A stretch of 64,000 nt of DNA, from NCBI GenBank assembly GCA_965113315.1, contig OZ220365.1; one strand, written 5' to 3'. Below the pieces are notes generated by a model. The model did not search any database and was not told where the DNA came from. It saw only the letters and a program-made list of their open reading frames with translations. Shown piece after piece: positions 12,101 to 47,885 of the stretch (position 1 is the first letter of the stretch; the number at the start of each line of letters is the position of its first letter). A program made the position numbers and the translations under genes. The DNA comes from Podarcis vaucheri. Its lineage: Eukaryota.

Positions 12101-12101
<1 letters not shown>

Positions 12102-12179
12102 TTATTATTATTTGTACCCCGCCCATCTGGCTGGGTTTCCCCAGCCACTCTGGGCAGCTTCCACAAAGACCAAAAATAC

Positions 12180-16325: not shown

Positions 16326-17120
16326 CCTAGTGACCTCTGGGAATATGATGTGTTTGTATGATTCTTCTAACTCCATTTTTTATTTATATAGTAAAGACTT
16401 TCTCTGACTGAAATGCTTCAGACTGCAAGTGAGGAAGGGATTGCATGTGTGCTGCCTAGGAGGAAAAAAAGAAGTTTCCTGCCCATAGAAAAAGAGCATA
16501 ATCAGGAAGAAGGTTGGGATGAACCCATCTCTTGTTTCCTATATGTAGTAGGTGCTTTAATGCGACAGCAAAAAAGCAATCCTCCTTTACTTGCAACCTG
16601 AAAGAACTCAGTCCAAGGAAGGGGAAATTGCCATTTGTTTCTGCTGAATGTATAAACTGGCCTTGGCCTAGTTCACTGAGATCTTTGCTAGAAAAATGGC
16701 TCCACTACTAGTCTAGACAGTCTGGAACTACCTTGTATCCTTTTGGCTGCTTTTCCCAACCACCCCCTTGCTTCTGTCTGCTAAGCTTTGGACTGACTCC
16801 TGCATTCTTGTCTTGACAACTGGATCTTGCATGCCTGCTGTAAATACTATGTACAAAAACTCCAACTGCCATCCTATGTGCTCTCCCAAGCCACCCTTTG
16901 TGTGGCGTGAAGAGTGAGTACTCTACATTGCCGAACACTGTGGCTACCCCAGCTGTTTCTCTAGCACTTGGTGGAGATGTAAGCTCAGATTGGTGCTGCT
17001 TTTCTAGAGATATAGCAATGCTGTATTATTATTAATGCAATGCTGCAGAAGCTGCCCACATATATGTGCTCTGTCTCCTGGCTTGACAGGACTAGGTCTT
17101 TTAATGCCAGAAGAAACTAA

Positions 17121-17355
17121 GGGTTCCAGCATGGTGTTGTGGTTAGAGTGCTGGACCAGAACCTGGAAGAACAGGGTTCAAAACCCCACTCAGCCATGAA
17201 GCACACTATGTGACCTTGGGCCTGTCACTGTCTCCTAGCCTAACGTACCTCACAGAGTGATTGTCAAGATAAAATTAGGAAGGAGGCGAACCATGCTGGC
17301 TGCCTTGAATTCCTTGTAAAAAAAGCTATAAATATAACAATAAATAAATAAATAA
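17121..17355 (+). mobile_element. Ther1/Squam3-type SINE
   Basis: ccagcatggtgttgtggttagagtgctggac head, tgaccttgggcctgtcac core and (AATA)n tail. Confidence 0.8.
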
Positions 17356-18462
17356 TGAATAGAAAGTTCACAATAGGTTAAAATAAATGTTTTTGCAGTG
17401 AGCACTGATAGGAAATGGAATGTATCCTAAATAAATGGAATTTTCCCCAAGCAGAAAAGTATATGCTGATTATCAGAGGACGAAGGAAGTTTAGCAAACT
17501 CACATTATTCAAGAAATGGGTGATGCGCTGGAGTGAAGCAATGCTACACAGAAAGATGTTCTGCTTATTTTGTTTGTTTTTGCAAGATGTCTGCCTATCA
17601 TTGTCCTGGAAACGATTCAATAATCTAAAAGCAAAACAGGATGTAAATATCTCTGGCAACTGACTAGAAGCATTACTTCAAAAAAGATTAAACCATTACA
17701 AGATTACAGCACTGTCCTTCATAGGACTATACATATTTGCTTTTAGAAAGTTGTGTTTCATCATTGGCACAACACACCTCACTTTATCAGCGATGAAAAC
17801 CTACATTCACACTGCCTCCTTTTCATAGCTGTACTTCTCAAGTGTCTGCATTTAAGAGCCCTCTCTGAAAAATGTGAATACCTAACACAGCACACAGAGA
17901 GCAGGTCATACCAAAACTCAGCCACAGGTAGGACTGTGAGTAAACCACAATTATGTGTAAGCTGAAGAGAGACCACGGACTGTTACGTGGTGGGGAGTGG
18001 GTCATCTTCCTACCAACTTCATGTTTCATTTAGAACGAACATGAAAATAAGCTTCTAGCCCTTCTAGTTGGTGAGCAGTGTTTGAAATTAGCCTGGTGGC
18101 AGACACATTTTGCTACTGGCTGGCAGGTCCAATTGCGACTACGTGGAGATTTCTGGGTGCCAGCTTGGCAGCCACAGTTTAAAAACCTCTTCCTTAGTCC
18201 ATCGTTAATATCGTTTCCATTTCCACTGTGTGTGTTTCTCCTTCCTGAACTGGGAAAAGTGAATTGTTGTAAGAGCAAGCTACAGTCAAGCAATATAGCT
18301 GAGATCGTAGAATTGTAGCGTTGGAAGGGACCCCGAGGGTGATTTAGTCGAATTCCCCAGTGAATAGACATTCCGTTGTGCTGACTGCAACCTAGATTCA
18401 AGATGCCATTTGGCGCTCAGCTAATATACCTGAGTTTCTAACACTGTAGAGATCTCACTGTA

Positions 18463-18717
18463 GAGAGCCAGTGTGGTGTAGTGGTTAAGAGCGGTAGTCT
18501 CGTAATCTGGGGAACCGGGTTCGCGTCTCCACTCCTCCACATGCAGCTGCTGGGTGACTTTGGGCCAGTCACACTTCTCTGAAGTCTCTCAGCCCCACTC
18601 ACCTCACAGAGTGTTTGTTGTGGGGAAGGAAGGGAAGGGAGAATGTTAGCCGCTTTGAGACTCCTTAAAGGGAGTGAAAGGCGGGATATCGAATCCAAAC
18701 TCTTCTTCTTCTTCTTC
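18463..18717 (+). mobile_element. Young full-length Squam3B-type SINE
   Basis: GAGAGCCAGTGTGGTGTAGTGGTTAAGAGCGG head with A/B boxes, core, intact CpGs and a (CTT)n tail. Confidence 0.85.
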
Positions 18718-19496
18718 TCAGAAGAGAGGAAGGCAGTGCCTGCCTGTCTTTGCATCAGATATCACTGCTTTCTACCTCCCTCTAGAACACTGTTCTACTA
18801 AGTATAATATCTAGTGCTGAGCATCAGCACCACAGTGGTGACTTCTGCAGAAACGGCTATCTCCCCAAGATCACTGCAGTCTCGTTCAACAGCAGTCCAT
18901 TTGCAGACCAGCCACAGGAACTTTGAGATGGCTGTGGGAAGTCCTTACTCAATAGCCTAAGAACAGAGTGCAAGCTCCATACAAAAGGAAATGTTTTGAA
19001 TACAGAAGTTCTCGGGTTCAATCCCTGTCACCCTCAGTTAAAAGTGGATTTTCATTGTTGAGCATGCTCCTTCTTATGTGAATGTAGGGTTACAATCAAG
19101 ATTAACACTGGTCTAGGTGAGAGCTAGGAAAGAAGTCTGGTTGGTGAGAGACATGCCGCCACCACCACCTGCCATGGTAGGAAAGACCTTCTTTTGGGCA
19201 ATTCTGGAGGTCTGTTTTGTTGATAAATTGCTACTGCATTGGGTTGCGATGCTTTGCTTTTAATAACTGGCATAGTATTCCTCTTTTTAACAGCTGCTAT
19301 ATATTACTTTAAAAACACCTGGGTGTTGTGTTATATAGCTCCTGGTGTTCTTATTCTTCCCCTTTATGAGAAGCACATGCATTTTAACAAGCTTAGGGAG
19401 GGCAACGTGGGCCTCCCAATCATCAGCATTCTCGGTAGGGGCGATAAGGTCGTTGTGGAACACAGATGGGCCCATTAAGGGAAATGGGGATATTTT

Positions 19497-19800
19497 ATTT
19501 TATTTAAACTTCAAGGCTACCCTTCATCTGGACAGATTCCTGGGTGGTTTACAAGGAATTAATAAAGCACAATTAAAACCATGAAACAAAGCAACCGTTT
19601 AAAATAATGCCATACAAAATGGGCAAATAACAGCAGCAAACATAACACACCCATACACCCAGGGCTTCCACAATCTAAACAATTCCATGAAGGGCCAGGG
19701 TGAGCAGGTATGTTCTCACTCGGTGCTGGAAGCACCAACTGCACCTCCAGTGGAAGGGAATTCCACATTTGGGACACCACTGCAGAGAAAGATCTTCCTA
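19497..19800 (-). mobile_element. L2 LINE 3' fragment
   Basis: ctacccttcatctgg...gggtggtttaca tail and gggaattccacatttgggacaccactgcagagaaag ORF2-end motif. Confidence 0.65.
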
Positions 19801-22565
19801 AAGGGTGTATCCCTCTTCTCTTATGATGTTTGGATTCACAGAGCTCCATGTTGCATTTTATTCTGCCTTGGAAATAATGTATGAACAATTCTGGCTTATG
19901 CATGGACAGTCCAAAACACTGTGGATGGTTTGTAACACTATTGAGATTCCTCAGTCCCCACTGTCCTCAGGCAATTGTTCATCTACTTAACCAAATCAAC
20001 CTTTGTATTTAATTTACCTTGTGCTGCACTACACACTGACCTCATTCTTTCTATTTTTGACTTCATCCTTGTTGTCTCCTGAGTTAGCCTTCGGTTTCTC
20101 ATTCCCCCTGGTTGCAGTACACAACAGCTGTTGTTGATTTCTGCTGCAAATGCTCCAAAGATATGTTTTGCAAAACAGACGGTAGCATTGTAGCATTACG
20201 TATGGTCTGTTAGCATTTTAAAACTATGCCTACAATGGATACGGTTGTCCTCTTTATGCAGTAGAACCACCATTAGTTTTTCATTCACTTTATTTCGAAA
20301 AAAAGGTGGCTAATCTACCGCATCAGTACCTCCAGACAAGCAAGTCCACTTGGAACCATTCTAACCATTGGAAGCATTTAGTGAAGGACCAGCCAGCTGA
20401 GATCAGTGATGTGCAAGCAAGATTTCAGGTTCCATCCTTGACATATGATGAAAAATCTCACAAAGATGTAGTCCAAAATATCTGGAAGGCACCAGATTGG
20501 CAAAGGCTATGCTATACACATGTTTTTTTTTGCAAATTGTGACATATAAGCACACACCACAAATCAGAGGAAAACAAGGGATAGTTAGAAACACTGAAAT
20601 GCAGAGGATTTAATGTGGATGCTTTGTAAAAAGTGAGAGAACAAAAGGTTGAAATTCCACGGGGGGGGGGGAACAGGATTGAAACATGTTCTGAGACAAC
20701 CAGAGCTTTCTGACTGTAGGGACTTTGAGGCTGGGGGAGAAGTGGCTGGCTGCATGCTCTCTTTCTTCTACATTGCATTTCCTAATGGTACTGTGAACGA
20801 TGGGTATCTCTCGTTCGTCCCTCCAAACTTCCAAAAGAGACACAACCATCTCTTTTGCTCAGTACTTCCCGGTTCTCTAGGTCTCAAGGCTCATCAGTCC
20901 CATGTCCCTTCTAAGGGTCATGGTGAACATGCCCCAACCAAGTACACCACCGATGCAGGAAAAGGACAGTGGGGAATGCAGAAAGAAATTTTAAATGAAC
21001 ATATTCCCGAATGAAGACAGAGTAAGCACACATTCATGCACCACTAGGTTATTGAAGCTGGCCCAATCTCAGTAAAAAGCTAGCCATAATGGTCAAAGAA
21101 ACTCTACGGAAAAAAATAGTTATGTCTTGATATAAAACATGATAAAAGCAATAATAAGATCTTCCCTGGTTATAAAACCAATTTAAAGTAAAAGGCCTGT
21201 GACAAATGGAGCCTATGTACATGCAGGCATTTATGATTTAAAGCACAACTGGCCAAAGAATTTGTACTAGTGAAACCTACGCCAATTTTATAATTATCTT
21301 CAGTGGGACATGAATGCGATGCACTAAGCATAAATCACATTTTACCGGTAATTGCATAGCCACCTCATCTTTTCTGCACGTTCTGTTGATACATTAACTC
21401 CCTGCTGCCAACTTCTTGCTGTTCATATATCAAAGCCTTCCCCTTGTCCTCGTCCCCACCCCTGTACTCAATTTAGTTCATGTAGCAATCTACTTCCCTG
21501 CTTTCTGTGCCTGTGGACAGCTAGCATCCCCAGGTGGTCTCCCATCCAGACAAAGGTCGGGATGGAGCCTGCTTAGTTTCTAAGATCAGATCCATAAACG
21601 TATCTCTGAAATTGCCAATTTCTTAGGAGTTATTGGTCAATGCAGCTCCTGTTTATAGTCAGCACAAATTATGACAACCCTGTACATGAGTAGAATTTAC
21701 TTCTGACTCCTTAGCAATGGTATCTCGTAAGGAATCAAAATTTGCAGAGGGGGCCTTATTGGTTAACCCTCCTCTTTGCAGCACACAGACATACATTTCC
21801 CCTCCTTTCCATATCCAACCGTTAAATCAGGGTTGGGAACATTCCGCAGCTGGAGGGTTACATTCTTTTGTGGGGAATCTTCCAAAGTCATATGCTAGTG
21901 GTGGGTGGGGTGAGAGGTGAAAAGGGGGCAATACAATATATGTGACTTTGACATGTACACTGTGCTATGTTCTAGTCATGCAAAAGTGTTTCTGAAAGCA
22001 CACATGCACACACCACCATCCAGGCAAGCTAGACATTATCATAGTTCAAGGACACATTTCAGCCAGGGGGTGGTGAGGGGTGTGGACTAGGAAGGACGTG
22101 GAGCTTGTGGAGCGCTCCAGAGGTTGGAGAGAGAAGCTACCATCTAGTGGATCTACACAGAAATATTGATTGCCCTTAAGTCATAGGAAAGGTATCACAG
22201 ATTTCAACAGCATCCCAGTTTCTGATTTCTTCTAACTGGTAGGTGCTCTTCTAGCATTTTCAGATTATTGTTCTGAAGACCTCCCTCAGCCTACAATCCA
22301 AGACCTTTTTGGACTGCCAAAATATTAGCATCCAAATAACGTTTTTCTATATATTCTAGGTCTTATATTTAAGAAGCCCTGGAGGGTTCTAGTTATGTAC
22401 TCTTTAGATACCTGTCAGAATTAGGCTGTATAAACTGACAGAATACTATTTAAAAAGTCAAAACAACTGAATGAAGACCGCACCTGCCTGTTGGCAAGAT
22501 GGCCTAAGATACCAATAGCATGAAACACGTATTGCTTATGCATATTTCTGTCCTATGGGCTGGCG

Positions 22566-22616
<51 letters not shown>

Positions 22617-22619
22617 ACA
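22566..22619. repeat. (CT)n(CA)n compound microsatellite
   Basis: Read directly. Confidence 0.95.
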
Positions 22620-22974
22620 TTCTGGTTTCCTACAAATCTGATCAAATTTTGCTCAAACATTTTGATACATTGTATATATTCTTTTCAATGTAGTGATTAT
22701 TTATTAATTCAGCTTAATAATATTTTTGAAATCATTTGTATCTGACCTTTTAGGCTTTTCTCTAAAGCGGCTCACAAGAAGACGGAAAGAAAACATGACA
22801 ACATCCAGTCAAACCAAGTCCAGAACAAAATTAGCCAAAACGCAAGAATAGAGATCAAACATTCAAACCAGATTAAAAGCCAAGCAAAATACAACAAAGT
22901 CTCAGCAACTCACTTAAAAGCTTAAAAGGGAGCCAATCTAATCTCTCATGGAAAGGAGTTCCACAACTGAAAAA

Positions 22975-23460
22975 TTTCTCCTAACATTTCGTTGAAACTT
23001 GCTTCAATGCAATTTCTACCTGTTTCCTGTGCTCTGGAGCAACATATTCTGCAGAACAGCCCTTCCGACATCCGAACGCCCCTGTCACGCCACACCAACC
23101 ACACCCAACTCTTTCAACTGTTCCTCAAAGGACTTAATTTTCACACTCCTCGCCATCTTGGACACCTTCCTCTGGACATGCAGGAATGACATGATCAATC
23201 TAATGTCTGTACATTACAATGTCTTACAATGTGGAACTCAGAACACTGTACTTCAGATGCAGTACAGAACAGAGTGGAACTATTACTTTTCATATTCTGC
23301 TCCCATTAATGCAGCTTAATACTGCATTAACTTTTTATCACTCACATTGCGTCGCTGGCCCATGTTCAGTTTATGATCAGCTAAGTCACCTAGATGCCTT
23401 TCATGTGTACTTCTGCCATGCCTGGTTTACCCATCCTATATTGGAGAATTTGTTTCCTGG
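22975..23460 (-). mobile_element. CR1 LINE ORF2 fragment
   Basis: tccttttcaactgttcctc...ccatcttggacaccttcctctggacatg and tgtggaactcagaac...gtacttcagatgcagt are typical antisense CR1 RT 3' sequence. Confidence 0.7.
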
Positions 23461-24944
23461 TTCCAAAAGGCAGGATTTAACATTTACCTCTAAGCAGCAT
23501 TTGCTATAGCATTTCTTCTGTGTAAGGAAAAAGAAAGCACAAAATAGCACAGGCATGTGGGTTTAGAAGCATAGCTTTAGACTACAGTCTAGTTCTCATT
23601 AAGCTAATAAACCTATGTCTCACCTACACCTCTTAATTGCAAGTATACCTCAATATTTCTACTTGCAGGAGAGAAAGGCCCAAAGAGGTAACAAGGCAAA
23701 GAAAAATTAGTAAGAAAAATTGGAAGGAGATAAGCTATTAGTGTGAAACAAGCCCTTGTTGATGCATGCGCTGTGTGTGCTTATACTTTGGTGTATCTTC
23801 TGCATAAGGCATTTTGGATGGATGTTGAGTTTTGGTTCCCTTCATTCACGAGGAGAAAAATATTTGTCAGTTCTAAGGTGGTAAAACAGGAAGACTCAAG
23901 ACAAACCTCTTCTTCGTACTGCTCTCATGAAACAATTACACTCTGAGAGATTAACCAAGAGCTTATTTGTTATTAGTACAAGGACAAGGGCCTATATAAT
24001 TTGCTCCCTGTCCTAGAACAAAACAGCTATTGTACCGACAGGCAATTATTCGGAGGACTGTGATCAATTACACTGCGAACTGTTTCTGGTGTTTAATTGG
24101 GTTCTTAACCATTTAAACTATTAGATTTCATCTTTAGACAAGTCACTTTAATCAAGGTGGAATTGTTTTCTAGCTATTACGGCTCAGAAATGCAGCCTTC
24201 ATCCTCAGTACTTCTCCCCTGGGATAACTGGTAGATTGTATAATTCAGGTTTTGTAAAATGTTCCAAGATATGGTCAGATTTGTTCTCATGTTGAAGGAT
24301 CTCTCACAAAAGCAAGCAGGTAGGTAGTTTGCATCTCCCTGGCCAAAAGGCCTTCTTAGTATTCTCCGACCCTTCACAGAAATTAATGTTGGCCTGTGTA
24401 GACTCACTCCCAGAAATCAGTTTTAACAGTTGAGCAGAAGTTAAAAGCAAATTAGTTTTCCGTTTTGCTGAACATGCTAACAATTTTGGTTTAATTCACA
24501 AAAACATTAAGTCACTTGCACGTAGACAGGAGTCACTGGGAAGACATATGCAGAACCTCACACTCCATTTTAGTAGGACAGATTTAATTCTCAGGCAGGC
24601 ATACAGAACTCTACGAAACACTGTTAAATAATCAGAAACAGCATATTTTTTATTTTAAAAAAAAAAGTGTGAGCAAAACCAATCCTTCAAAAATCTTCAC
24701 ACGAGCACCAATTGTAGGACCTCAGAGCCGCATCTACAAGTAATTCCAAGCCAAGCAATTCGCTCTCTGGTGGTCACTCTCAGCACTCTTCCCCAGTGTA
24801 GCCCCTAACACTACTTTCTTATACATCCCAAATCCAAACAATAACCTTTTCATTCTGCCTCCCCACTCAATCTCTCCCAAACAACCATGATTCCAACTCA
24901 CTTGTACTTTCTGGCTTGTATCCAACCAAGTTTCACTCAGAGTT

Positions 24945-25170
24945 GAGCAGTTTGGCTGGTGCCTTCATCAGACACTTTTAAGCACCAGGTGTTCCTCTTC
25001 AGCCATGCCTTTGGCTAATTAACATCCACTACCCTTTTAAACGTGTTGTGGGAGGGGAGAGTATCGGTTTGTTTTTGCTCTTATTTTTATTATGTATTTT
25101 GTGGTTTTATAGTGTACTTTTATGTTGTGAACTGCCCTGAGATCTACAGGATGAAGGGTGGTATACAATT
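24945..25170 (+). mobile_element. L2 3' end
   Basis: gtgaactgccctgagatctacaggatgaagggtggtata tail; similar tails at about 9490-9550 and 63900-63970. Confidence 0.65.
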
Positions 25171-25937
25171 AATTGATTATCAATGGACCAAAAATAGTCA
25201 TGTTCATTAATTTCAATGGTCCTATGATGAATAGGGCTAGCACTGGATACAACCCTCTGTCTTATTCTCTAGATTCCCCATGGCTTTTTCATGCCAAGCA
25301 ATGCTCAATTCTGCTTTTAGAATTGTACTAGAATCCCTGTGTATTCATCTCAGCCCTAAACAGAAGAGCAGGCAAAAGCCACAACTTGTTAGAATCTCAG
25401 CAGTGAGGGGGATGGGACTGGGGACTGCTCTTTAATTAGTTGAAATTGTCTGCCACTGTTTGGCCAATTCCTCTAATACACATATTAAAAATGCAATTAT
25501 ATTATTTGGTTTTATGATTACGTTGTACGCCACTCTCGGTATCTCCCAGATGTTTTTGGCTACAGTTTCCATCATTGCCATCATCCGCCATGCTGTCTGA
25601 GGCTGATGGGAGTTGTAGTGCAAAACCTCTGGAGGTCCCCAGGTTGGGGAAGGCTGAACTAGGAGAAGCACTTCTGCTGATGCAAGGCACAGCCCCTGAT
25701 TTCCACCAGTTCCTCCTACCCAACAGCCCCCTATAAGCTTCTCCTGAGCTTTGGGTGGCCTTCTGTAACAGCGTGAGACAGAGAAATCAACCGGATGTCA
25801 TTTTTATGACATCATTCTGTACTGAATTCATTACAACCCTTTGCACATACAAGACATTCCTCTATACATCATTATTTCCACTTTGTAAATGGAAATTGGA
25901 AGCTGAGGGATAATGGACTTGATAAAGCCATCCAATG

Positions 25938-26107
25938 GCCTGGTTTGCACATAACACTAAGCTATAGTTAACATTAATCAAGCTTTATAAACCAACAACA
26001 ATTTACAAACATGGTTTGTCTGTGGTTAAGAAACTATGGTTTAGCTGCTGGGCTGGGTTCTGGTGATCAAATTAAAGTATGGTATAAGTGCTATGCGCAA
26101 ACCAGGC
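25938..26107. mobile_element. Palindromic MITE (PIF/Harbinger-like)
   Basis: GCCTGGTTTGCACATAACACT ... AGTGCTATGCGCAAACCAGGC inverted termini; relatives near 1490-1670 and 43730-43960. Confidence 0.6.
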
Positions 26108-27460
26108 GTGTTCATGGATGAGCTGTGATTTGATGCCTGGTCTCTTATGTTAAACTCCCATGCTAAATTTCTATATATCAATCAAGATTGCCCCTGATCA
26201 AAATCTAAAACAGTACTTTTATGGCCATTTTGGACCTTGCTTTAAATCAAGCTCATAAAAGCTTTTAAACCAAGTTAGGGTTAGCATAAGTCTGCTTTAG
26301 AATGAAGCATTATCTTACAAAATACAACAAAAAACTATGCTTCATTCCACACATTTTTATATTGGTACGTGTGTGCCATTTTTAAAGAGACTTTTGGATT
26401 GCTCGTAAGAATAAGCCATTTTTCAGTTTCAGGCTCTAACCATTATTTAAATCTAATTACTTTGCAGTAGTGGTTTTGTTTTGTTTTTTAAGAAAAAGCA
26501 CCACCACAGCTGCACTGTGGAGGCTGTCATATTCAATTGCTTATGGCTCTATGAGTCATTTAAGAGGTCTCTGTTCCAGGCATTCTATGTAATCTGTTAT
26601 CAGAGGGTCTTCCCTAGAATTGGAGAGGAGCATGATTGAGGCAGGTTTCTACAAGTGGCTTTTATTGGAATGCTTTCCATTATAATTCTACTATACTACA
26701 AAGTATTCAGCAGCATTTAATTTCCACCTGCATTTTACAAACAGATTCTAAGGGACACTATGCCCACATTTTCCTGCAATTATAGCCAATACGATTTTTT
26801 TACAGCATAAGAATAGAAAAATATAACTAATACAAGCAGGCAGTAATAAATTAAATACAAAAACAAAACCAGTAGGATCAAAAAGCAAACAAAACAGTTG
26901 CAGAATCAGTCCTCATATCTTGGAACATGAGTTTCACTGCACAAAGGCTTCATTCTCAAAAGACCTGGTACAACAATAGTACTTTTGTTTGCCTCCAGAA
27001 AATAAAAATAAAAATAAGGAAGTGCTTATGCCCTTGGAGATAAGCAGTACTAGAGTAGAACATTAGCAGATCTTAAAAGTTCACACACCAGAATGGTGCT
27101 GACAGCAAAACCCTATATTCTGATGTAGATGTTCCCAATATGCCATCTCCAATCAACTTCTATGGAAGTTTGCAACACAAAAGCATCCTGTCTCTGGCAT
27201 GCCCACTGTATCCCCAGTTCCTTACATATACACATTGGATTTCACACCTGTACACAGCCCACATTTTATGATGTATACTTTGGTCCCTATATATTCTTAT
27301 GCAAACAGGTTGTTCAATGTGCAGGTGTCGGGAGAGCCCAGGAGGATAGCAGTGGGAGGGTATAGGCCTCACCGTGCACCATTCCTGATCAAACTTTGGC
27401 CTGCATCTTACATTTCCTTTTTTATTTGGAACCTGTTTGGTCTTGCTCTAAAGGTAAGCC

Positions 27461-27604
27461 CAGGCATAGCAAATTTAGTGCCCTGCAGGTGTTGTTTTAC
27501 TCCAGCTTCCTTTGTCCGTGACCACTGGCCAAGTTATCCGGGGCTGAACGGAGTTGGGGTCCAACAATATCTGGGGAAGGTAGAGACCACGTGGGCTACG
27601 TCTG
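27461..27604. mobile_element. Old palindromic hAT MITE of about 140 bp, about 260 nt into the intron after the TULP4 donor
   Basis: Similar to the 136-bp family (tgaccactggcc...ggagttggggtccaacaatatctgg). Other old copies at about 5857, 8140, 25535, 52037, 53866 and 55147. Confidence 0.6.
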
Positions 27605-27866
27605 CTTTCTCTTTTAAGACAACCAATGCATACATTACAGCAAGGCATTACCAATGATAAAGATTACGGCAAGGCATTGCTGATAATAAACTTTAATCCA
27701 TCACAGTTATTTACTGAAGCAGGTGGGGCGATGGCAAGCAGCAATTTCATTTATTTTCCTAAGGCTTTTCTGTAATCTACCTATTTGGCACAAATGCCCT
27801 TTTATCAAAACAAACCACTGTGTTCACCTTTCTAAACTGAAACTTAAGAGCTTAGCATTTACTCAC

Positions 27867-28118
27867 CTCACTGTTGTGGCCCCTTAAATTGAAGTTGATG
27901 CGTTGCGGAGTGTTCCGGTCTCTTCTACAATGGCTGGAGGTGAACGTAACACCCACAACTCCTCTGCCATTGCCCGTCGCCAACCAGCCTTCCTCATAAT
28001 ATCGCCTGCGGCATACAGGCTTCTCCTTCTCACTTTTAGGAACCCTGCCTTTCCAAGAGAGGCAGAGGATGTTGGAATCACTACAGAGAACAGGCCCATG
28101 TTCCACTGCGGCATACAT
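27867..28118 (-). CDS. TULP4: Tubby-related protein 4, first coding segment (codons 1-84, start of the WD40 region); 3'-partial, continues beyond the left edge of the window
   Basis: Translation MYAAVEHGPVLCSDSNILCLSWKGRVPKSEKEKPVCRRRYYEEGWLATGNGRGVVGVTFTSSHCRRDRNTPQRINFNLRGHNSE matches the vertebrate TULP4 N-terminus as I recall it. ATG context GCAAAGCATGT has A at -3. The 252 nt end in phase 0 at a GAG|GTGAGT donor (plus strand actcac 27861-27866). Confidence 0.97.
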
Positions 28119-30172
28119 GCTTTGCTATATATTTCCCTTTTGGCATAAGAAAGTACTATGTCTAGTGCAGAAAGTGTAAATCTGACGCTTCTGTTTTATT
28201 GATAACCTCAAGAGTTTCGACAGATCAGAATACGAAGTGGGGAGGAGAGAGAAGGTCAGTTTTTATAAATATCCACCAAATGCATAGTGAAAAATTTCTC
28301 TATAAAAGATGACGACAGTCGGCTAAGAAAACGTAATGCTTAAAAAAACCAAAACAAAACCAGGTTCATTTTGATTTGGAGTCATTGGAGTGAGGGTACA
28401 CTTATCCTTTGGAGAAAGAGCTACTGCAGAAGAGGCGTTCAAGGAAACGGCAAGCCGTCTTTTTGCTCAAATGGATATAATCATCGTACAGCCTGAGATT
28501 TCCAGTATAGCATGATGCGATTCCAGAGACAAAGGTTTGCAGATGTGTGGGTTTCAAGTAACTTAAGGCTTTAAAAATATTTCCTTCAGTTGGATTTTCA
28601 CACGTTCATAAATCTCGGACATTCATCTTTCCTCAAAGCCACCCTCTGGCAGATCTTCCCCGTCAGATGAAATTTCCGCTGCTAAAGCTGAAATAGATTG
28701 CATAAAGGGGTGGGGGGAAAGGCACACAGACCGCGCGAGACCGAAGACCAGAGTTCTGGGCAGTTACCAATGTGCCAAGCCAGGTGGGAAAGCCCTTTCT
28801 GAACTCAACTGCTCACTGTTCAACCCAGCAGTCTCTGCAATCCAAAGGCTGCCCCATTTCCTTTGCAGCTGGCGGCTTCCCCACCACCTCCAATGGAGTC
28901 CCTGTTTATCACACTGCCTTGCCTGCTTCCTCACAACTCACAGCCACATGCAGGCTTGAAAAGAAAAGCCCCTTTGCACTTAGCTGTCGTTGTGTTCTTG
29001 TTGTTCCTTAAATGCTCTGAACCTTTTAAGCTTCTCAAACAAAGACATTCACCTCATGTAAACTCCAATAGTTTGGGCTGTTTTTATTTTATTTTATGCC
29101 TTTGTCTTTTCCCTTTTTTCCACTAGGAGAGAATTGTAGGACTCGCTTTTCATCCTCTTGTTAAAAGAAGTGCCAGAGCTGAAAGCATATCAAGTAAGCG
29201 ATTATTTGCAGATCCTGATGGATTCAAGAAGGCCAATTAGAAATAGTCTGGGGAGCCGCACAGAAAATCCAACTTCCCTTTCCTTCTACGGTTTCCCATC
29301 ATGCCTCCTCTGTGCATCCAATAGGTTCCTTCCTTATTGATATTTCTCCAGAGTGCAGATTCATAATTTTAACACGTTTGCAGCTGTAGAATGCGTTTAA
29401 AAAGTGTTCCAAATGCTTTGAGTAATATTTATTATCAAATATTTGTACCATGATACAAGGAACCCAAATAAGAACTGCATTAACAGTAATCAGGAGAAGA
29501 AAAAGCAGCAAACCGAGCTGCAAAACTCAATACAGGATGATAAAGTCTGGGAAGCTCAATCCCTAGATCTGTCCCACTGCTCCTAAACTTGCCTGCTTTC
29601 AGTCATCAGCACACGGTTACTTGTCACAACTTAACAGGCGGACATATGAAAACCCCACTGCATCAATCAAAGTCCAGTGCAGAAAAGCACCAGAGATTTG
29701 CGCATTATTCCGCTTTCAGGGATGCCAATATCAATCTCCCCTCCGCTCAGACTGTTTTATTTATTTCATAGAGGTATTTGTGTAATTTGCTCTGTGCAGA
29801 GGATGTTTTTCTTATGCTGCTTCTTGGAAGGGGTTTTCCCCCACTTGCCACAGACCGTATGGCAAACTGACCACTAGTAGCAGATGGCATTCCATGGGAT
29901 TTTGGTCTTTGTGCTGTCAGGTCGCTCCATCTGGTGCTTGAATTAATTTTCATCCATGGCAAAAACTCTCCAAAGTATGCAACTGCCAGTCTGTGGGTTT
30001 TCAGAAATGTGTTTGTATATATATGTGTGTGTGTGTATGCATACATACAGTATGTACAGGCACTCCCTCAACTTGGCAATTTGGGCTGCATCTGGTGCCG
30101 CAGTTTGGCTATGGCAGTCTAGCAAGCCATCTGTCACTTATTTGAGTTGGGACTCCTTGGGTGCTTCCAATT
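27867..30172 (-). other. TULP4: Large TULP4 exon (2306 nt): about 2.05 kb 5'UTR plus the first 252 nt of CDS
   Basis: Strong acceptor on the minus strand, TTCTTTATTTTTTATTTTACAG|AATTGG (AG at 30174-30173), and donor at 27867. The interval has no recognisable transposons, unlike its flanks, and retains CpGs. Confidence 0.75.
27867..30172 (-). ncRNA. Predicted single-exon circular RNA, putative lizard orthologue of circTULP4
   Basis: Inference. The mammalian exon carrying the TULP4 start codon is a known source of an abundant brain circRNA of about 2 kb. Here an equivalent exon has both splice sites and long, repeat-rich flanking introns. No expression data. Confidence 0.55.
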
Positions 30173-30503
30173 CTGTAAAATAAAAAATAAAGAATTATAT
30201 ATACACACATGTACTGAAATAGCAGGACTGTACAACTGTGCACATTGAAACTGAGGGTGCCAAATGAGATGGCAGATCTTGTTCAGTATCATGTACTGAC
30301 AATATACTCTCGTTTTGCAACTTTGGTGTGAAAAATATTTCAAAACCTTTTTTTAAAAAATTAAATCACATAACATGCAGGACTTGAAAGTGACACAATA
30401 GGTTTTAAATAAAAGGAGGAAAGGTGGGTGGGTAGGGTACATACACTATAGCGACCACTGATTCCAAAATGATGAATGAAACTTGTCAGCAAGTCTGTAA
30501 ACT

Positions 30504-30727
30504 GAGAGACAGTATAGAGTGTTGGACTAAATCCTGGAAAACCAGAGTTCAAGTCCCTGGACTCAGCCATGAAGCACACTGAGATGGTCACTGCCTCTTA
30601 GCCTAATGTACCTCACAGGGTTGTGAGAATATCATCAGGAGATGACATGGAGAACCATCTACTCCACCTTGAACTCCATGGATGAAAGGAGGGATATAAA
30701 CGCAATAAAACAAAACAAAATAAAACA
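30504..30727 (+). mobile_element. Ther1/Squam3-type SINE
   Basis: gagttcaagtccctggactcagccatgaagc...tacctcacagggttgtgag core with an A-rich tail. Confidence 0.75.
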
Positions 30728-31022
30728 AAGAGGAATAAACGGGTTGTCAAACCTCCACAAATGAGTCTTTTGGTTAGCACAAAGCAAAACAGGAAGAGGA
30801 GATAATTATTTCTTCAGCTATTATTCCTCGGATAAGAAGCTTCAATTCTTGGGATTCCTTCGACAAAATATTTCTCAGCAACTGCTACTTAACACAAGAC
30901 TCAGCGTTAGCTCTAAAAGATTAAAAGGTGCTTTTCTGTTTGACTTTAAACATTTGATTCTCAGAAATATGAATAAGCTGCTCTTCAGTCACACCATTAC
31001 TTGATCACACTGTCCAGGGTTG

Positions 31023-31068
<46 letters not shown>
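31023..31068. repeat. (TTA)n microsatellite
   Basis: Read directly; about 15 units. Confidence 0.95.
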
Positions 31069-31069
<1 letters not shown>

Positions 31070-34000
31070 TACCACTACTACTACAGTAAATGAATTTGCT
31101 CAAATATGCCTGGTATTAAAAAAGAGGACACTATAATCCCCTATCTAATACTCAGTATGTTCAAAGGAGCTTTAGTGACTTACCAAGTACAAAAACGGGA
31201 GAGAAATAGAGAGCAGAGAAAGAGCAACATAATAATGTTCTGCATTTGGAGATGGAAAAATTCATCCCTGGGTGTATCAGTGTTATCAATTTTTAATATG
31301 TTAAACCGAGAATATATACCAATCACATCCTGTCTCATTCTATTTAAATCCGTGGTTCTCCAAATATGGAACTGGGATTTCCTAAGAAGAAGAGAAGCAG
31401 TTGCTATGTAAGGCCCAAGCTGCTCCCTGATGCAATCTATACTGTCTTAATTGGAACCAGAAGAACAGTGTCATGTCAATGCTGTGGACAAAATAAGTTG
31501 ACTGACAGTGAAAGAATCTAACCGTGCTAGCTCATGTTCTTTGCTTCCTTGTGCGCCTCCACATCTAGCATCCTGATGTAGTTTTCTAGCAGATACCTAT
31601 CATATCATAGAATTGTAAAGTTGGAAGGACCCAAAGGGTCGTCTAGTCCAATCCCCTGCAGCATCAGGTATGTTATTCTCAGTCCAGAGATATAAATACA
31701 TCAATAATCTTTCTACTAGTCAACTACTAGCTAATCAACCCATATTTTACTTTGCCTTAATTGCTTTTGATCATGGCTAGTTACACTGTGCAGCATCCAG
31801 CTCATCCCATGTACTTATTCACTGATATTTTATATTTTCCCAGTTTGCAGGACTACTGATCTCATTTACAAACACAGTAGCTGCCATTGCTGACTTTTTC
31901 TGAATATAATTATCTGATTTCTATTATTGTTGTTAAATTTACAAACACAACAGAAATACTAAAATCAATGATAATAAACACAATCAATAGGTGAGGAAAC
32001 ACCACATTATGCAAATATGAGAGGTCTAGCAGATTCTGCCTCATCCAAAGATGCCACAAACACTTTAAAACTTCAAATTAAAGGCCAAAAGCACAGGTAA
32101 AAATGAAAGTTCTGGCCTGTCGCCTAAAACTAGATGTAGTCACCTCTGCTACAAATATAGCCACCTCTTAAAAGACAACCTTTTGGTAGTGTTGTGGTAA
32201 GTGCAGGATTCTCCCAAACCTGAATACCACACAGTTTTTACAATGTTAAAAACAAAGAACAGGTCTTTGCTACATAGTTGAAACATAAATATTTCCCAAT
32301 TTTAAACATAGGGAGCTAACTGATGTATACCTAATTCGGCCACTTATCCATCTAGCTCAGTACTGTCAACACCGGCACTCCAGAATTTCAAGCAGTGGCC
32401 TCTCCCACTCTGAGCCCCAACTGGGGATGCTGGATGGAATCAGTCCTACCCTATTCCAACAGATTATTCAAAACAGACCATTCTAATCTCATAGATTGTG
32501 CTTTACAAACTTCTAGGTAGATCAGCCCTCCTCTGTCCCTCCATCTTTTTCTTCTTAGCTTCTAACCAAAAAGAACAATTCTTCTCTGCCAATCTTGGCA
32601 GAGCAGAGAAGCTTCTTTACAGCCAATAAACATTAATCCCCCCCTTTGAGTGGTGTTTTTTATCCAATAGAAATTAAGTATTCTCAATACCTTCTGATAT
32701 TCCATCTCCTCTTTATCCTCATTAAGTGGTCCACCACTTAGAATACATACTGCATGCATACTAAAATTGTAAACAACATTTTTTGTAAATTAAAAAATAA
32801 AATAGAAATAATTTTAAAACCAAAATTAATGCTTACTCTTTTTCATTCAAACGCTAAGAGCCAAGATGCTCCTGGAGGTAGAATTCTGGAGTAGAGATCT
32901 AGTTTCAAATACATGCCAGGTCATGAATTCTCCAAGTGGACTAGACCAAGCCACCAGTTATCAGTATTCCACTTGTAAAATATGAGTAACAGTGACCTAA
33001 CTTAAAAGTTTGTTGTGACAAAGTCGCAAATGGGGATTTAAAGTTCTCCCATCATCATGCAACACATGATGAACTGGACACTCCATTGATATTGCTAGAC
33101 TTGCCTACTCAAACGCATGACCCACTGAGTTCACTGGGGCTTACTCACAGGTAAGGAGGTATAGGATTGGAGCAGAAATGTTTTGTAACACTCACAGAAT
33201 CGTCATACAAGATACACTTGATTCTTTGGAGTTTGTGCATGCATGCTCCCCAGTGTAGTCACAGGAGAACTGAACATCAAGACTGCCGCTTTTGATGAAG
33301 CCAGTAGCAGCTCTTAAAAGTTCCCTGTTGCTTTGATCTCTGCCTAGAAAGGTGGCTAGGTATAGGTGTCCTAGTTTGCTACTTAATGCTCTAGATATTT
33401 TTTTTAGAGTGCGCAAACAGATGACCAATGATAAAGCTCAGAACCGCTCCTCCCCAATGCAAAAATGAGCACTTGTGACTTTTTGCAAAACAGCTCTAAA
33501 ACAGGTTTCTTCCCATTTCATTCCTCCTGCCAAGTGAAAAGCTGGCAAAAGGACTTACAGGCCTAGTTTCTGGTACTACATAAGACCCCACGGTGCTTAC
33601 AAATGATCAACAGCTGGCTGGCACTGTGCAGAGGAACCCCACACAGTCACTTTTTCTCATCGACTATCAATCTCATGACTGCTATCTGCTAGAAAGTCAC
33701 AGCTTTGGCCTTATCTATGGAAGAAAAGAAAAATGTTAAAAACTGGATACAGTATATATTCTGTCATTTATTTTTATATTTATTATATTTAGTGGTTCCC
33801 AATTAATACCGTTTACCAGCCAAAGCCAACCGAACTGTTAGAGGAGAAGACCTAGTATGTTCCTGATTTATCCCCTTGTACTCACTACAGGTTAGAAGAA
33901 CACACATTTCTAAGCTGCCAGTAGTCTGTGCAAGGGAATAATTCAGGTGGAATCCACATACCTTTGAAATCGAAAGCAGAAGCTCATAATGCATCTGGAA

Positions 34001-34364
34001 TCTGCTCTGAAATTATCTGCTCTGAAATTGTCAAGTGGTGCTGCAGTTCACAGCAGGCATAAATACCTGGGATTCAATAGATTTAGGTCAATATATTTAG
34101 ACCATAAATTTTAACATATTTATTAGAAAGACAGTTCCATTTAAATAAATGGGACCTTCCCCCAAATGTAAGGCTTGAATGTTAGAAATTTCCACTGGAC
34201 AGGACCCAATACTTCAGTACAACTCTTCCCACACATCCTTTGCTTGCAATACATGATGTCCAACAGCTAATACCATACTCAAAGGTATTCTTCCACTTAA
34301 TTTTGTTTGTATGTTCATTAGTGAATTCTTAATGTTAATTAGTGAAATCTTTTTTATTTTTATT

Positions 34365-34750
34365 ATTTAATAAATTTCTATACTACCCCTCATCTGAAGA
34401 TCACAGGGAAGTTTAGAATATAAAAATGCAAAAATGGAACAAAAACAATACCCTCCCACAGTTTAAAAGGCCACAGAGTGTTTAATTAGCCAAGGGTCTG
34501 GGGGAGAAGAGGACTGTTTTTGCCTGGTGCCTAAAGCTATCTGGTGCTTAAAGAGTGGCTGGGAAAACCCAGCCAGATGGGTAGGGTATAAATAAAGTTG
34601 TTGTTGTTGTTAAGCAAAGTGCATCAGACGAGCCTCCCTGGGAAGAGCATTCCACAAGCAGGGAGCCACTGCGGAAAAGGCCTGTTCTCATGTTGCCACC
34701 CTCTGGACCTCTCATGCAGTGGGCAAATGACGAAGGGCCTCAGAGGATGA
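34365..34750 (-). mobile_element. L2 3' fragment with an oppositely oriented short L2 tail nested at about 34545-34610
   Basis: ctccctgggaagagcattccacaagcagggagccactgcggaaaaggcc motif and ccctcatctgaagatcacaggg tail. Confidence 0.7.
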
Positions 34751-36597
34751 TTGCAGAGTTGGCAAAACATCACCTCCACCCCTTCTCCACACCCACCTTC
34801 ATTTTCCTCCTTTCACCTCCCCTTTTTCACCAGGGCCAGCTCTTAAGCAACTGTTTGTCCATTTTGGTCTCCCTGGTAAAAGAGAACCCCCTTTTTCTGG
34901 ATGTCTATGCAGGCAAATAAAGGTTTCTGTATACTTTTAGGCTCATTCAGAGGCTTCTCCTCAGCAACAGCCTGTGGGTGGCAATGTATAATACTGTGAA
35001 GGCAGATGTTAAGAAACTAGATTTTAAATAATGACATGTGGCCATGTCAGCTGCAGGTAATCAGTTCCTAATTTTAGAATACCAACCCTGTTGACATCCA
35101 CTTTGCTGATTAAAACCTTCTAATCAGCCCCTCTGGCCTATATGACCTGATAGGAGATGGTTGATTTTGCTTATTAACATTCCAGGAGCCTTCTCCTGTT
35201 TCTCCAAGCCCACATTTTATATAAATGTAAGTACTGAGGACTTCTGGAGGCTTCAAAATAAACAAAGATGCTCTGATAACATGAAGAATATTACATCTGA
35301 TACAATCATCCTTATGAGGATTTTCTGTGACTACATGGCGATATCTCACCCACACATTAAAAATAAATAAAAAATGAGGTGATAGCTTGGTTGTACAAGA
35401 AGAAAGCTGCTATGCCCCTCCCTGCACATGGCCTTCAAATAAATAATAAATAAAAAGTACCAAATATTCGGTAACAAGGTCATCACAAACAATATCCTGT
35501 TGGTACCACAGTCCAACGAGCAAACATGGTACTAATTTATGAACTAGGTCAGGAATATCATGTCCCCCTCCCCTGTCCCCCATACAAGATATACATTGCA
35601 CACTCAGAAAATAGAATATCTCCATGACAAAAGTGCTACTCTCAGGGAAATTGGCCATACCACGTACAACATATGAGGGGAAATGTGCATTTATTGCATT
35701 AAAAGAAAGTAAAGAAAAAGATCCTTAAAGATTACTTGCACAGTTGCTTTACACAGAGAACCCGTCCTTCAACAGGGAAGGATATTCAATTTATAACACT
35801 TTCGGGCCAGTAAAAAGAAGTTACTTTCCAATCATAGTACATAAAACCAACAGTATTTGCTACACAGAAGAATCTGAAAGCAAAAGTGTATGCAAAATAT
35901 TCGATTTTCTGGTTACGCAGAACAAGGCAGAATTTCCTCAGCAGAAATATGCTTACTGTAAGATCTCTTTTTACAAAATGAATAATGCTTTTGCCTACAT
36001 TGCACAGAGATAATGCGTGGAAGTGAAGATACTACCTAGCTTTTGGTCTTGGCAGATGTGGACTTGGCAAGTGTGCATAGCTACAATCACACTGCACACA
36101 GCAAAGCCCCACTAGTGTGGCATTTAGAACCAGTAAAGTATTATGGATGATACAACTCCACAACCAAGCACTGTACACTGAGTGCTCTCTCCACAAGACT
36201 GTCCACTTCTGAGAATGCTTTTTGTTGTAAACTTCTTGGATGAAGGGAAGTATATAAATAAAATAAAATAAAAATAAATAATACTATTCCAGAGTCTTTC
36301 CAAATGCCTCCTACTTCTAATCAAGAGGCTCTGAGAAAATCTGAGGTTCCCAAATACAAGTGGGAGGAGAGGTGAGGGAAGAATCTATGCATTATCTCCC
36401 ACTCATTCAGTTGTATCTTTCAGACGGGGAAGTCTACAAAAGCAAAGGCATTTATGTGCTTTTCCTTTGACTAGTCTTCCTCAAAGACTGGAGGAAAGGA
36501 AGCAAAATTTGTGATCCTACTTTTAAAAGTTGCTTTCTCTTCTCGCTCTCTCTGCCCAACCCGCACCCCTCACCAAAGCAACTGGAGCTTCCAAGTA

Positions 36598-37070
36598 CAG
36601 TGGTACCTCTGGTTACGAACTTAATTTGTTCCGGAGGTCCATTCTTAACCTGAAACCATTCTTAACCTGAGGTACCACTTTAGCTAATGGGGTCTCCTGC
36701 TGCTGCCGTGCGATTTCTGTTCTCATCCTGAGGTAAAGTTCTTAACCCGAGGTACTACAGTGGTACCTCTAGATACGAACGGGATCCGTTCCGGAGCCCC
36801 ATTCACATCTAGAGGTAAACGTAGCTAGCGATGGCACATCTGCGCATGCGCATGTCGCTTTTTGTCGCTTCTGCGCATGTGCGTGACGTCATTTTGAGTG
36901 TGCATGCGTGAGCAGCGAAACCCAGAAATAACGCGCTGCGTTACTTCCGGGTTGCCATTGAGCGCAAATCGAACGTGCTCAACTCGAAGCATATTTAACC
37001 CGAGGTATGACTGTACTTCCGGGCTAGCGGAATCTGTAAACTGAAGTGTTTGTAACCCGAGGTACCACTG
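36598..37070 (+). mobile_element. MITE family A host copy, interrupted by a nested MITE
   Basis: TA-flanked family A TIRs; the body resumes correctly after 37015. Confidence 0.9.
36758..37013. mobile_element. Nested pogo/Tigger-like MITE (CpG-rich, distinct body)
   Basis: TA|CAGTGGTACCTCTAG ... CCGAGGTATGACTG|TA inserted at an internal TA of the host. Confidence 0.85.
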
Positions 37071-38750
37071 TAAATGCTGCTTGCTTCCAAGGAACATGCA
37101 CCGTCGCAATTTACTTTGAATGTATCAGTTTAGAGCCCCCTTGGCTATCTAAATTTGTTTTTGGATGGGTAAATCTTTGTATGATCTAATTTAGTATGGA
37201 ATACATAGAGTTCAAACAGCATGTTTGTTTTAGTATAATACTGTAACATATTGTTGAGGAGTGCTCTTTTTGTGAGGAACTTGGGATTTGATCAGCTTGA
37301 ATAAGAAGCTGATAATGCTACATACAGCTTGGTTTGGTTGCTTTAACTGGGTTTTATCCATTAGAGGAAACAAATTGAAAAACCAATTTCACCTCAACAC
37401 ATCTTGTACAGAGACACAAAATATGCCCAATTGTTTAACCAGTATTCCATGTTGTTCCAAGCTGCCTGATTTATTTGGGCAATTTCCTTCTGAATTAATA
37501 ACATGTGTTATTTATATCAATTTATGACACATGCAAAGAGATGTGAAGCGCATAATGGATTAAAAAAGAAAAGGGGGAAACTACCAGCAAGGTTTAATGC
37601 CATCTTGTACATCAAGCTCTTGAGCTGTGAAATCATGATTAAGATTTAAGGCAAAGTACTTTCTGAGGCCTCAAAGTGACAAACAACGAAGAACTGAGAG
37701 CCATGGCCATATCACAGCTGCATTTCAAGTTTTGGTTAATAGTCATGTAGCCAGTTGGTGAACATTATGCTCTGCATTTCACACAGTTGATGTTGACTGG
37801 GCAGATGCTAGGTGGATAAATTTTACTATACAGTATATGTTAATGGGGTATTTGAGCAGGCTTCATCGTACCTACTACTTACTATACAAATGATTTTTTT
37901 CATGATTGTGTCCATCAGAATGAGGAGCAGGTTGGATATTTTTGTCTAAGAAAAGGAAACTGAACAAGGCCAATATTTCAGACCTGAGTTGTGTAATCAG
38001 GACAGCTGTAGCCCAGATGCCTTTGTAGCCTGTGAAAGCTCAGAGATCTTGCCATCATCATATCTTTACAGGGTAGTGACCCAATCAATTAACAAAGACA
38101 AAAACTACCTATTCAAAGAGGGCCATCAGAGTTATTTGAATGACTATCACAAGTTATTTCCTTTCCTTAATATATGACGAAGATAGGGCATCTTCAGTTT
38201 ATAAGCCATGTGGACTCTGCTCTTCAGTCTTCCCCAGCTGGCCACAAAGCTACTTCCATAGCTATTCTACTGGTCTACATGGACTTATTTCATCTCCCAG
38301 TATATAAAAAAGAATGTAGGCAGGACCACACCATGTATGTGAGAAACCTAGAGCAGCCTTATTATATACAATGGCTATTGGGACCGGAATCCGTTCAGAT
38401 GCATTGCCAGCACTGGAGATATGTAGCTATATCAGGGTAGAGGATAAAGGGGTTGCTACTAATTCTAGGATAAACAATGACTTTTGCAATGGTCAAATAA
38501 AGGTTAAAGGCTTCTCCATCTTCATTGCTAAAGATGAAGTCTAGTTGCTTGATATTCTTGCCTTGACTTTACTTTTCCTCTTTAGAAATTTAAGCACCTG
38601 GTAAACCACAACAGACGGTTAATAAGCTGTGCAGCCTTTTACAACATCTCAAACCTTCAAAACCTTGTTGCAGAAGTGACGGGAGAATACACAAGCAGGG
38701 GTGCTTCCAAGCAACAGCAGATGTTTTTTAACACTACGGTAGCACTAATC

Positions 38751-38886
38751 CAGGCTTCCTCAACCTTGGCCCTCCAGATGTTTTTGGCCTACAAGTCCCA
38801 TGAGCCCTAGCTAGCAGGACCAGTGGTCAAGGATGATGGGAATTGTAGTATCAAAACATCTGGAGGGCCAAGGTTGAGGAAGCCTG
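38751..38886. mobile_element. 136-bp palindromic hAT MITE
   Basis: Long TIR CAGGCTTCCTCAACCTTGGCCCTCCAGATGTTTT; perfect TSD CACTAATC. Confidence 0.9.
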
Positions 38887-39014
38887 CACTAATCCCAGTC
38901 CTGTTCAGTGCTAATTGTGCATTACTTAGTCCCCATGTAAATGTAATCTGTCCATAATTAAAAGAAAGAGTGGGAGTCTGATCTGGACTAAAACTACAGC
39001 AGAGTTACAGCCTG

Positions 39015-39895
39015 GACTGTCTTGCCTTGGTAAAGGATTGGATGAGAGCCAGTAAACTGAAGCTCAATCCAGATAAGACTGAGGCACTGTTAGTGGATCA
39101 TTTCCTGGGCTGGATGGGTGGACGATTGCCTGCTCTTGAGGGGATCACACTCGCTCTTAAGGAGCAAGTACGTAGCTTGGGGGCGCTTCTGGATCCACTA
39201 CTGTCACTTGAGGCCCAGGTGACCTCAGTGGCGGGAGAGCCCTCTGTCAGCTTCAACTGGTGGCCCAACTACACCCCTATTTGGACAGGGATAGCCTAAC
39301 TTCTGTGGCTTATGCTCTGGTAACATCGAGGTTGGATTACTGTCATGCATTATAAATGGGGCTGCCTCTGAAGACAGTTCAGCTGGTGCAAATCCTGGCA
39401 CAACTGCACTGGCTGCCAATTAGTTTCTGGACCCAATTCAAAGTGCTGGTGTTGCACTTAACATAGCTCAGCACTTCAATACCTTAAGGATTGCCACTCC
39501 CCATACAAACCAACCTGGACCCCGCACTTGTCATCTGAGGCTCTTCTCTATGTGTCCGCTCCAAGAGGTTCAGAGGGTGGCAACAAGAGGATGGGCCTCT
39601 TCTGTGGCGGCTCCCCAATTGTGGAATGCTCTCCCCAGAGAGGCTCATCTGGCACCATCATTACATGTCTTCAGATGCCAGGCAAAAACACTGTTGTTTA
39701 CCTATGGCTATTAAATAATCTATGTCCTGTGTAAGTGTGGGGGAGAGGACGGTTATGATTATTATTTTACTGTTAGGCTGTCTATCAGCATGCATTTTGC
39801 TATGTTTTTATCATTGATGTTTTGTAATGCGTTTCTAATGTTGTACACTGCCCTGAGAGCTTTTGATAAAGGGTGATACATAAATTGAATAAATG
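39015..39895 (+). mobile_element. L2 LINE 3' portion (degraded RT C-terminus and 3'UTR)
   Basis: DWMRASKLKLNPDKTEALL and VRSLGALLD are hallmark L2 motifs; frameshifted; L2 tail near 39850-39895. Confidence 0.85.
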
Positions 39896-39929
39896 ATGGT
39901 GGTGGTGGTGATGATGGATTATTCACTGG

Positions 39930-40180
39930 ATGTCCTTGAGTTCTAGCATTACAAAATGGGGGAGGGGGGATTTTTCTCTGCCCACATTCTGTTGGCTAAT
40001 ACTTCCATGGGAAAAATATACCATGCATATTTTTATACACCTCTATCATATCCCATTTCACTTGCCTTCTCTCTAAATTAAAGAAGCCCAAATATTATAG
40101 TGTTTCCTCATACAGGAGATGTTGCATCCCCTCAATCATTTCAGTTGCCCTTTTCTGAACCTTTTCCAGCACTACAATCT
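39930..40180 (-). mobile_element. CR1 fragment
   Basis: ccatgcatatttttatacacctctatcat...ttgcatccccctcaatcatttcagttgcccttttctgaaccttttccag. Confidence 0.7.
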
Positions 40181-40359
40181 CTTTCAATCTGTTCCTCTGC
40201 CAGCCAGCACAAGAAACAAATGGGATTCACCAAAGAGAAGACAAAATTACATTAATTGCACCACCACTGCTGCTGTTCTAAAGAGGGGACTTGTTTTTAA
40301 ATGGAAATTTGAGTGCCCTATCACTGTGAAACCAACAAGGCAGTTGTGAAACTGACATA

Positions 40360-40584
40360 CAGTGGGAGCTCGGGTTACGTACTTAATTTGTTCTGGAGGT
40401 CCGTTCTTAACCTGAAGCACCACTTTAGCTAATGGGGCCTCCTGCTGCTGCCACGCCACCGGAGCATGATTTCTGTTTTCATCCTGAAGCAAAGTTCTTA
40501 ACCCAAGGTACTATTTCTGGGTTAGCGGAGTCTGTAACCTGAAGCGTATGTAACCTGAAGCGTATGTAACCCAAGGTACCACTG
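40360..40584 (+). mobile_element. MITE family A
   Basis: TA-flanked family A TIRs and body. Confidence 0.9.

Positions 40585-47883: not shown

Positions 47884-47885
<2 letters not shown>

Follow-up and report, generated by a model that had tools for sequence, protein, structure and literature searches.

Positions 27867..30172 (minus strand) of a 64,000-nt stretch of Podarcis vaucheri DNA (contig OZ220365.1 of assembly GCA_965113315.1; hereafter "the window") very probably correspond to the second exon of lizard TULP4, a linearly spliced exon that is the counterpart of the mammalian (mouse and human) circTULP4 exon, the source of an abundant brain circular RNA, and that, in some pre-mRNAs, may also be back-spliced. 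In mature linear mRNA, as seen in transcript contigs, exon 2 is joined to exon 1 with removal of a 28.2-kb intron and to exon 3 with removal of an intron of at least 27.9 kb. Based on the architecture shared with the mammalian locus, we infer that some pre-mRNAs are back-spliced from the donor at 27867 to the acceptor at 30172, which would yield a circle of 2306 nt. Its elements are the size of the single exon, its strong splice sites, the great length of both flanking introns and the SINE-like copies that lie in inverted orientation across it; they would make the exon prone to circle formation.

Identity and Structure of Exon 2

RNA evidence was obtained from three sets of transcript contigs, each from a different study (X1, X5, and X9), and from one run of raw reads (X23), over positions 27067-30972. 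Exon 2 and its parts were located as follows.

27867..30172, minus strand: TULP4 exon 2, internal, 2306 nt (transcript contigs from three studies and visible splice signals)
30173..30200, minus strand: acceptor, a long run of pyrimidines and the AG (ttctttattttttattttacag), ending in ttttacag (sequence; exon 1 is joined here in the X5 contig)
27858..27866, minus strand: donor, intron side, gtgagtaaa (exon 3 follows in contigs X1 and X5 and in three raw X23 reads)
27867..28118, minus strand: coding part, with the ATG at 28118 and 84 TULP4 codons, phase 0 at the donor (open reading frame)
28119..30172, minus strand: 5'UTR part of exon 2, 2054 nt (computed)

On inspection of the minus strand, the acceptor at 30172 was found where the intron end ttttattttacag meets the exon start AATTGGAAGCAC, and the donor at 27867 where the exon end CACAACAGTGAG is followed by gtgagtaaa. 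The splice sites, the 2306-nt interval and the start codon that had been described in a first-pass annotation of this DNA were all present at their expected positions.

The 84 residues encoded by exon 2 showed 94-96% identity to fish and frog proteins that are named Tubby-related protein 4 in their sources, and the boundary after ...RGHNSE was retained even in distant relatives with an identity of only about 50%. In RNA, the start of exon 3 encodes VVLVRWNEPFQ, in frame with exon 2. Judged from its sequence, the gene whose start-codon exon lies at 27867..30172 is TULP4. It is established that exon 2 is unexceptional and well conserved, as is the gene to which it belongs.

Comparison of the 64-kb window with itself yielded zero further matches to exon 2. 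TRF reported zero tandem arrays in the exon, which contains one short CA/TA simple repeat at approximately 30005-30052. The earlier description of the exon as transposon-free is consistent with the absence of in-window repeat matches, a comparison whose scope is repeats within the window rather than a transposon library. Pfam returned nothing for the 84 residues or for three open reading frames within exon 2, and Rfam returned nothing on 26000-32000.

The leader in exon 2 (28119-30172, minus strand) contains 36 upstream ATGs, against 37 expected from its base composition. The last of these lies 28 nt before the main ATG and opens a reading frame that overlaps it. On this mRNA, few scanning ribosomes would arrive at the TULP4 start.

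Linear Splicing and Flanking Introns

In a search of sequencing runs, one species, presumably the source of the window, contained the stretch in full. About three quarters of the 31-letter words of the stretch occur in a second species, represented by genome-sized as well as many small data sets; X1, X5, and X9 are three of the small ones. The contigs of X1, X5, and X9 spanned 27864-30174 and differed from the window at 18 of approximately 2300 positions (about 0.8% divergence), and the 800 nt of intron on either side was empty except for one X1 piece. Since the contigs cover the exon only, with 18 differences in approximately 2300 positions, they are spliced RNA from a close relative, in which exon 2 forms one uninterrupted block. 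The contigs overhang exon 2 by 2-3 nt, since the intron ends are matched by the AG at the end of exon 1 and the GTG at the start of exon 3. All 18 raw X23 reads on the stretch lay in one orientation, as a stranded library should give for a gene on the minus strand.

The 7.4-kb X5 contig carried 202 loose letters past the acceptor, and the 30 of these that were printed were an exact copy of 58358-58387. From this match, exon 1 ends at position 58356 and the length of intron 1 is 28,183 nt. The junction from the donor to exon 3 was seen in the X1 and X5 contigs and in three raw X23 reads. The start of exon 3 was absent from the window, even when 3 mismatches were allowed, so that intron 2 measures at least 27,866 nt. 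These data yield the following additional features.

58356..58559, minus strand: exon 1, non-coding, at least 204 nt, ending in GGACGGAG and followed by the donor gtaagg (X5 contig)
30173..58355, minus strand: intron 1, 28,183 nt (exon 1-exon 2 junction in the X5 contig)
1..27866, minus strand: part of intron 2, whose length is at least 27,866 nt (exon 3 falls beyond the sequence available)

The 5' limit of exon 1 at 58559 was derived from the length of the loose end of the X5 contig (202 letters plus the shared AG). Exon 1 sits in a GC-rich promoter region (GC 0.56). At 58500-58600 (minus strand), just upstream of the 5'-most transcribed base of X5, a (CAG)7 repeat was observed together with the palindrome TCACGTGA.

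Both intron lengths agree with the first-pass annotation, which had estimated about 28 kb upstream and at least 27.8 kb downstream of the exon. The same annotation had named linear reads that do not use the acceptor at 30172 as an outcome that would refute it; in the X5 contig this acceptor is used, in the linear splicing of exon 1 to exon 2.

Two of the contigs showed further peculiarities. In X1, a separate low-depth contig of 172 nt was located in intron 2, at 27188-27366, approximately 500-680 nt past the donor. It has a 7-nt deletion relative to the window and may represent pre-mRNA or a repeat transcript. The X9 contig corresponds almost exactly to exon 2 alone: at the donor end (27864-27875, minus strand) it includes 11 nt of exon 3, after which Illumina adapter sequence begins. 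This adapter end indicates that the assembly in that library did not extend into the remaining mRNA.

Comparison With Mouse circTulp4

Mouse circTulp4 (mmu_circ_0000723) is a single-exon circle of 1946 nt (Giusti et al., Sci Adv 2024; PMC11122670). Like lizard exon 2, the exon that forms it combines a long 5'UTR with codons 1-84, and its size is similar to the 2306 nt of the lizard exon. The donor follows codon 84 in both species, and the last 15 nt of the two exons are identical, both ending in GGCCACAACAGTGAG. In the 5'UTR, one block was found to be common to both species.

28520-28567, minus strand: 5'UTR block shared exactly with mouse circTulp4, consisting of CTTAAGTTACTTGAAA (16 nt), a 13-nt spacer and AAACCTTTGTCTCTGGAAT (19 nt)

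The pattern of 16 plus 19 nt, taken from the mouse sequence (PMC11122670 supplement), had 1 match in the window, with 0 expected. At the start of the exon, 14 of the first 24 nt agreed between lizard and mouse circTulp4 by eye. The mouse-lizard comparison as a whole consists of this one short pattern and of matching by eye. Based on these sequence similarities, the donor and the 3' third of exon 2 are clearly orthologous to the mouse circTulp4 exon, and the acceptor of exon 2 is likely to be the same as that of the mammalian circle. For the exon boundaries, whose alignment to human and mouse had been suggested in the first-pass annotation, comparison with mouse gave the same position at the donor end and the by-eye agreement of 14 in 24 nt at the acceptor end. 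The central claim of that annotation, that the exon is the counterpart of the mammalian circTULP4 exon, is borne out by the shared donor codon, the shared GGCCACAACAGTGAG end and the exact UTR block.

Further near-identical blocks of the mouse circTulp4 and lizard 5'UTRs were noted by eye at 28250-28740 (minus strand): TGCCAGAGGGTGG, GCTCTTTCTC(C)AAAGGAT, TCTTTTATAGAG, and TTTGGTGGA. The blocks of this region represent non-coding conservation across mammals and reptiles.

In mouse, the open reading frame that crosses the back-splice junction encodes 95 aa, consisting of Tulp4 residues 1-84 followed by SCKSPSRTFQS; its translation was looked for, and circle-derived peptides were not detected (PMC11122670). 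Translation of the joined lizard sequence gave a would-be junction reading frame of similar length (84 + 12 = 96 aa) with a different tail, NWKHPRSPNSNK. A comparable architecture, a large start-codon exon between very long introns, is found in circ-ZNF609, which is translated (cited in PMC11122670). That comparison concerns architecture only; as in lizard exon 2, the reading frame of circ-ZNF609 runs on across the (would-be) junction.

Two further differences from the mouse system were apparent. The circle has been demonstrated in mouse, whereas the lizard observations comprise the exon and its linear splicing only. Moreover, the main linear Tulp4 transcript of mouse does not use the circTulp4 acceptor (PMC11122670), whereas in the lizard relative this acceptor is joined to exon 1.

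Repeats in the Flanking Introns

The window contains six SINE-like copies of approximately 255 bp that are 82-93% alike (3090-3346, 11303-11525, 36596-36757, 40358-40586, 50714-50968, and 62519-62739). Five of them share one orientation and only 50714-50968 has the other. The copies that can pair across exon 2 or compete for such pairing are listed below.

50714..50968, plus strand: SINE-like copy in intron 1, upstream arm of the cross-exon pairs, 20.5 kb from the acceptor
3090..3346, minus strand: inverted copy in intron 2, pairing at 92.6% over 257 nt; distance to the donor 24.5 kb
11303..11525, minus strand: another inverted copy in intron 2, pairing at 88.3% over 223 nt; distance to the donor 16.3 kb
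40358..40586, minus strand: competing same-intron partner in intron 1, 84.6% over 246 nt
36596-36757: further competing same-intron partner in intron 1, 82%, nearer than the cross-exon partners

The two best inverted matches of the whole window, which holds only part of intron 2, bridge exon 2. Inverted SINE-type repeats occur in the flanking introns of both mouse and lizard, the repeats themselves being lineage-specific. Judged from these positions and identities, the repeat setting is permissive for circle formation, and not striking. The first-pass annotation had proposed that the circle-forming architecture is conserved to squamates. The exon and the long introns are in line with this proposal, and cross-exon inverted repeats are present as well; the back-splice joints that would complete it numbered zero, in data of low power.

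A CpG-rich insert of approximately 560 bp was also observed in intron 1, at 49830-50390 (minus strand), in a kilobase with a GC content of 0.55. Its ends are inverted relative to each other (CAGTGTTTTTCAACC ... GGTTGGGAAACACTG), and the motif GTGTGCC recurs in it. This GC-rich segment was considered as an alternative promoter; with its inverted ends it looks more like a transposon insert, and an alternative first exon there is conceivable.

Back-Splicing and Alternative Explanations

No back-splice joint between 27867 and 30172 was found in contig sets X1, X5, and X9 or in the 18 raw X23 reads, a search of low power. This negative result is weak because assemblies drop minor forms, the raw reads number only 18, and neither the tissue nor the RNA selection of X23 is on record. 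The search for junction reads recommended in the first-pass annotation, as carried out on these 18 raw reads and three assemblies from a close relative, thus returned linear joints and zero back-splice joints. The junction tail was also absent from all 57 short-protein matches that share the 84-aa N-terminus. This absence is uninformative, since the mammalian 95-aa junction reading frame is missing from the same set. The 57 matches themselves were rejected as back-splice reading frames: nearly all continue from GHNSE with V and unrelated sequence, which corresponds to genomic intron read-through.

Contig ends provided a different type of information. The X1 and X9 contigs, from different studies, both start 3 nt before exon 2, with one unaligned letter followed by AG. 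The terminal bases are ...GGAG in exon 1 and ...TGAG in exon 2, so that the last three are common and the fourth differs. With this shared GAG and differing fourth base, a k-mer graph in which exon 2 is entered both from exon 1 and by back-splicing would break exactly at this point. A branch of unspliced intron (cag) would place the break one base later than the observed contig starts. These starts are a hint, that is, a lead for a back-splice branch and not evidence of one. The X5 contig passes straight through both ends of exon 2 and the X1 contig passes the donor into exon 3. Because a well-covered back-splice branch should interrupt contigs, this read-through counts against a circle.

The strongest version of the circular reading holds that lizards have an abundant, brain-enriched circTULP4 that was inherited from the amniote ancestor and for whose function the 5'UTR blocks were kept. 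The donor codon, the similar size and the exact UTR block common to mouse, the long flanking introns with inverted repeats and the two contigs that begin 3 nt before exon 2 are all in line with it. Zero back-splice joints in four runs speak against it, and a role of the UTR blocks in the linear mRNA would explain their conservation just as well. A comparison of five mammals found few circles from orthologous loci, even these being tied to young, species-specific transposons, and argued for repeated, independent origin of circles in genes with long, GC-poor introns (PMC8516420). This result weighs against widespread inheritance and, since circles at orthologous loci are often independent, a lizard circle from exon 2 alone would be no proof of inheritance. 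Literature searches yielded no report of circTULP4 from lizards, from birds or from elsewhere outside mammals, in agreement with the first-pass annotation, which knew of no description in lizards; for an inherited circle, this lack of non-mammalian reports is a further point on the negative side. Taken together, an inherited and abundant lizard circle is possible, with the balance tilted against it. The specific proposition that circTULP4 is an ancient amniote circle, abundant in lizard brain, and that the blocks shared by mouse and lizard were retained for the sake of the circle rather than of mRNA translation, appears somewhat unlikely.

At the other extreme, exon 2 may be purely linear in lizards, with back-splicing absent or at the level of noise and the likeness to mouse reflecting conserved gene structure only. 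Every junction seen was linear, the X5 contig runs through both exon ends, and the inverted repeats lie 16-25 kb away, with competitors in the same intron. These observations have to be weighed against the very low power of the test (18 raw reads and otherwise assemblies), against the typical origin of circles from large exons between very long introns, and against the identical contig starts in two studies, which need a second upstream path. A purely linear exon is regarded as a somewhat unlikely account of the data.

That second upstream path need not be a circle. A different first exon, or a different donor of exon 1, with the same GAG end might instead account for the break at the acceptor in X1 and X9. 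The X1 contig is interrupted at the acceptor and continuous across the donor, which fits alternative upstream exons better than a closed circle path, and several transcript starts are present in mouse Tulp4. An alternative exon would, however, have to share its GAG end with exon 1, an agreement estimated at about 1 in 10 for an arbitrary exon end, and no candidate exon was found. We consider this explanation of the contig starts unlikely.

That circularisation acts as a regulatory sink, removing the only start codon and thereby setting TULP4 protein output, is highly improbable: exon 2 does carry the start codon, and the lizard acceptor is common to linear and putative circular products and would thus place them in direct competition, but in mouse, mutation of the acceptor lowered circTulp4 by 65% and left linear Tulp4 mRNA and protein unchanged (PMC11122670). 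In the lizard relative, exon 1 was never seen joined directly to exon 3, in data that could hardly reveal such skipping of exon 2. The mouse result also weakens the suggestion in the first-pass annotation that circularisation could limit TULP4 protein output. It does not transfer cleanly, since the lizard linear mRNA uses the acceptor and the main mouse linear transcript does not. Speculatively, direct competition between linear and circular splicing may be mechanistically more plausible in lizard than in mouse.

Implications

A conserved exon in a conserved setting is expected for a conserved gene, and the lizard circle is a testable prediction rather than a discovery. By analogy with mammals, back-splicing of exon 2 would probably be detectable in lizard brain total RNA; that the lizard circle would be as abundant as its mammalian counterpart is doubtful. 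The many upstream ATGs in the leader put in question how TULP4 is translated, or whether the leader has another role.

circTulp4 is among the few brain circular RNAs for which a knock-down mouse with a physiological phenotype is available. Mammals and reptiles split an estimated 300 million years ago, or rather earlier. If the prediction is true, formation of the same circle from the same exon in a reptile would be a rare case of true inheritance, and the UTR blocks conserved between mouse and lizard would become candidate functional elements.
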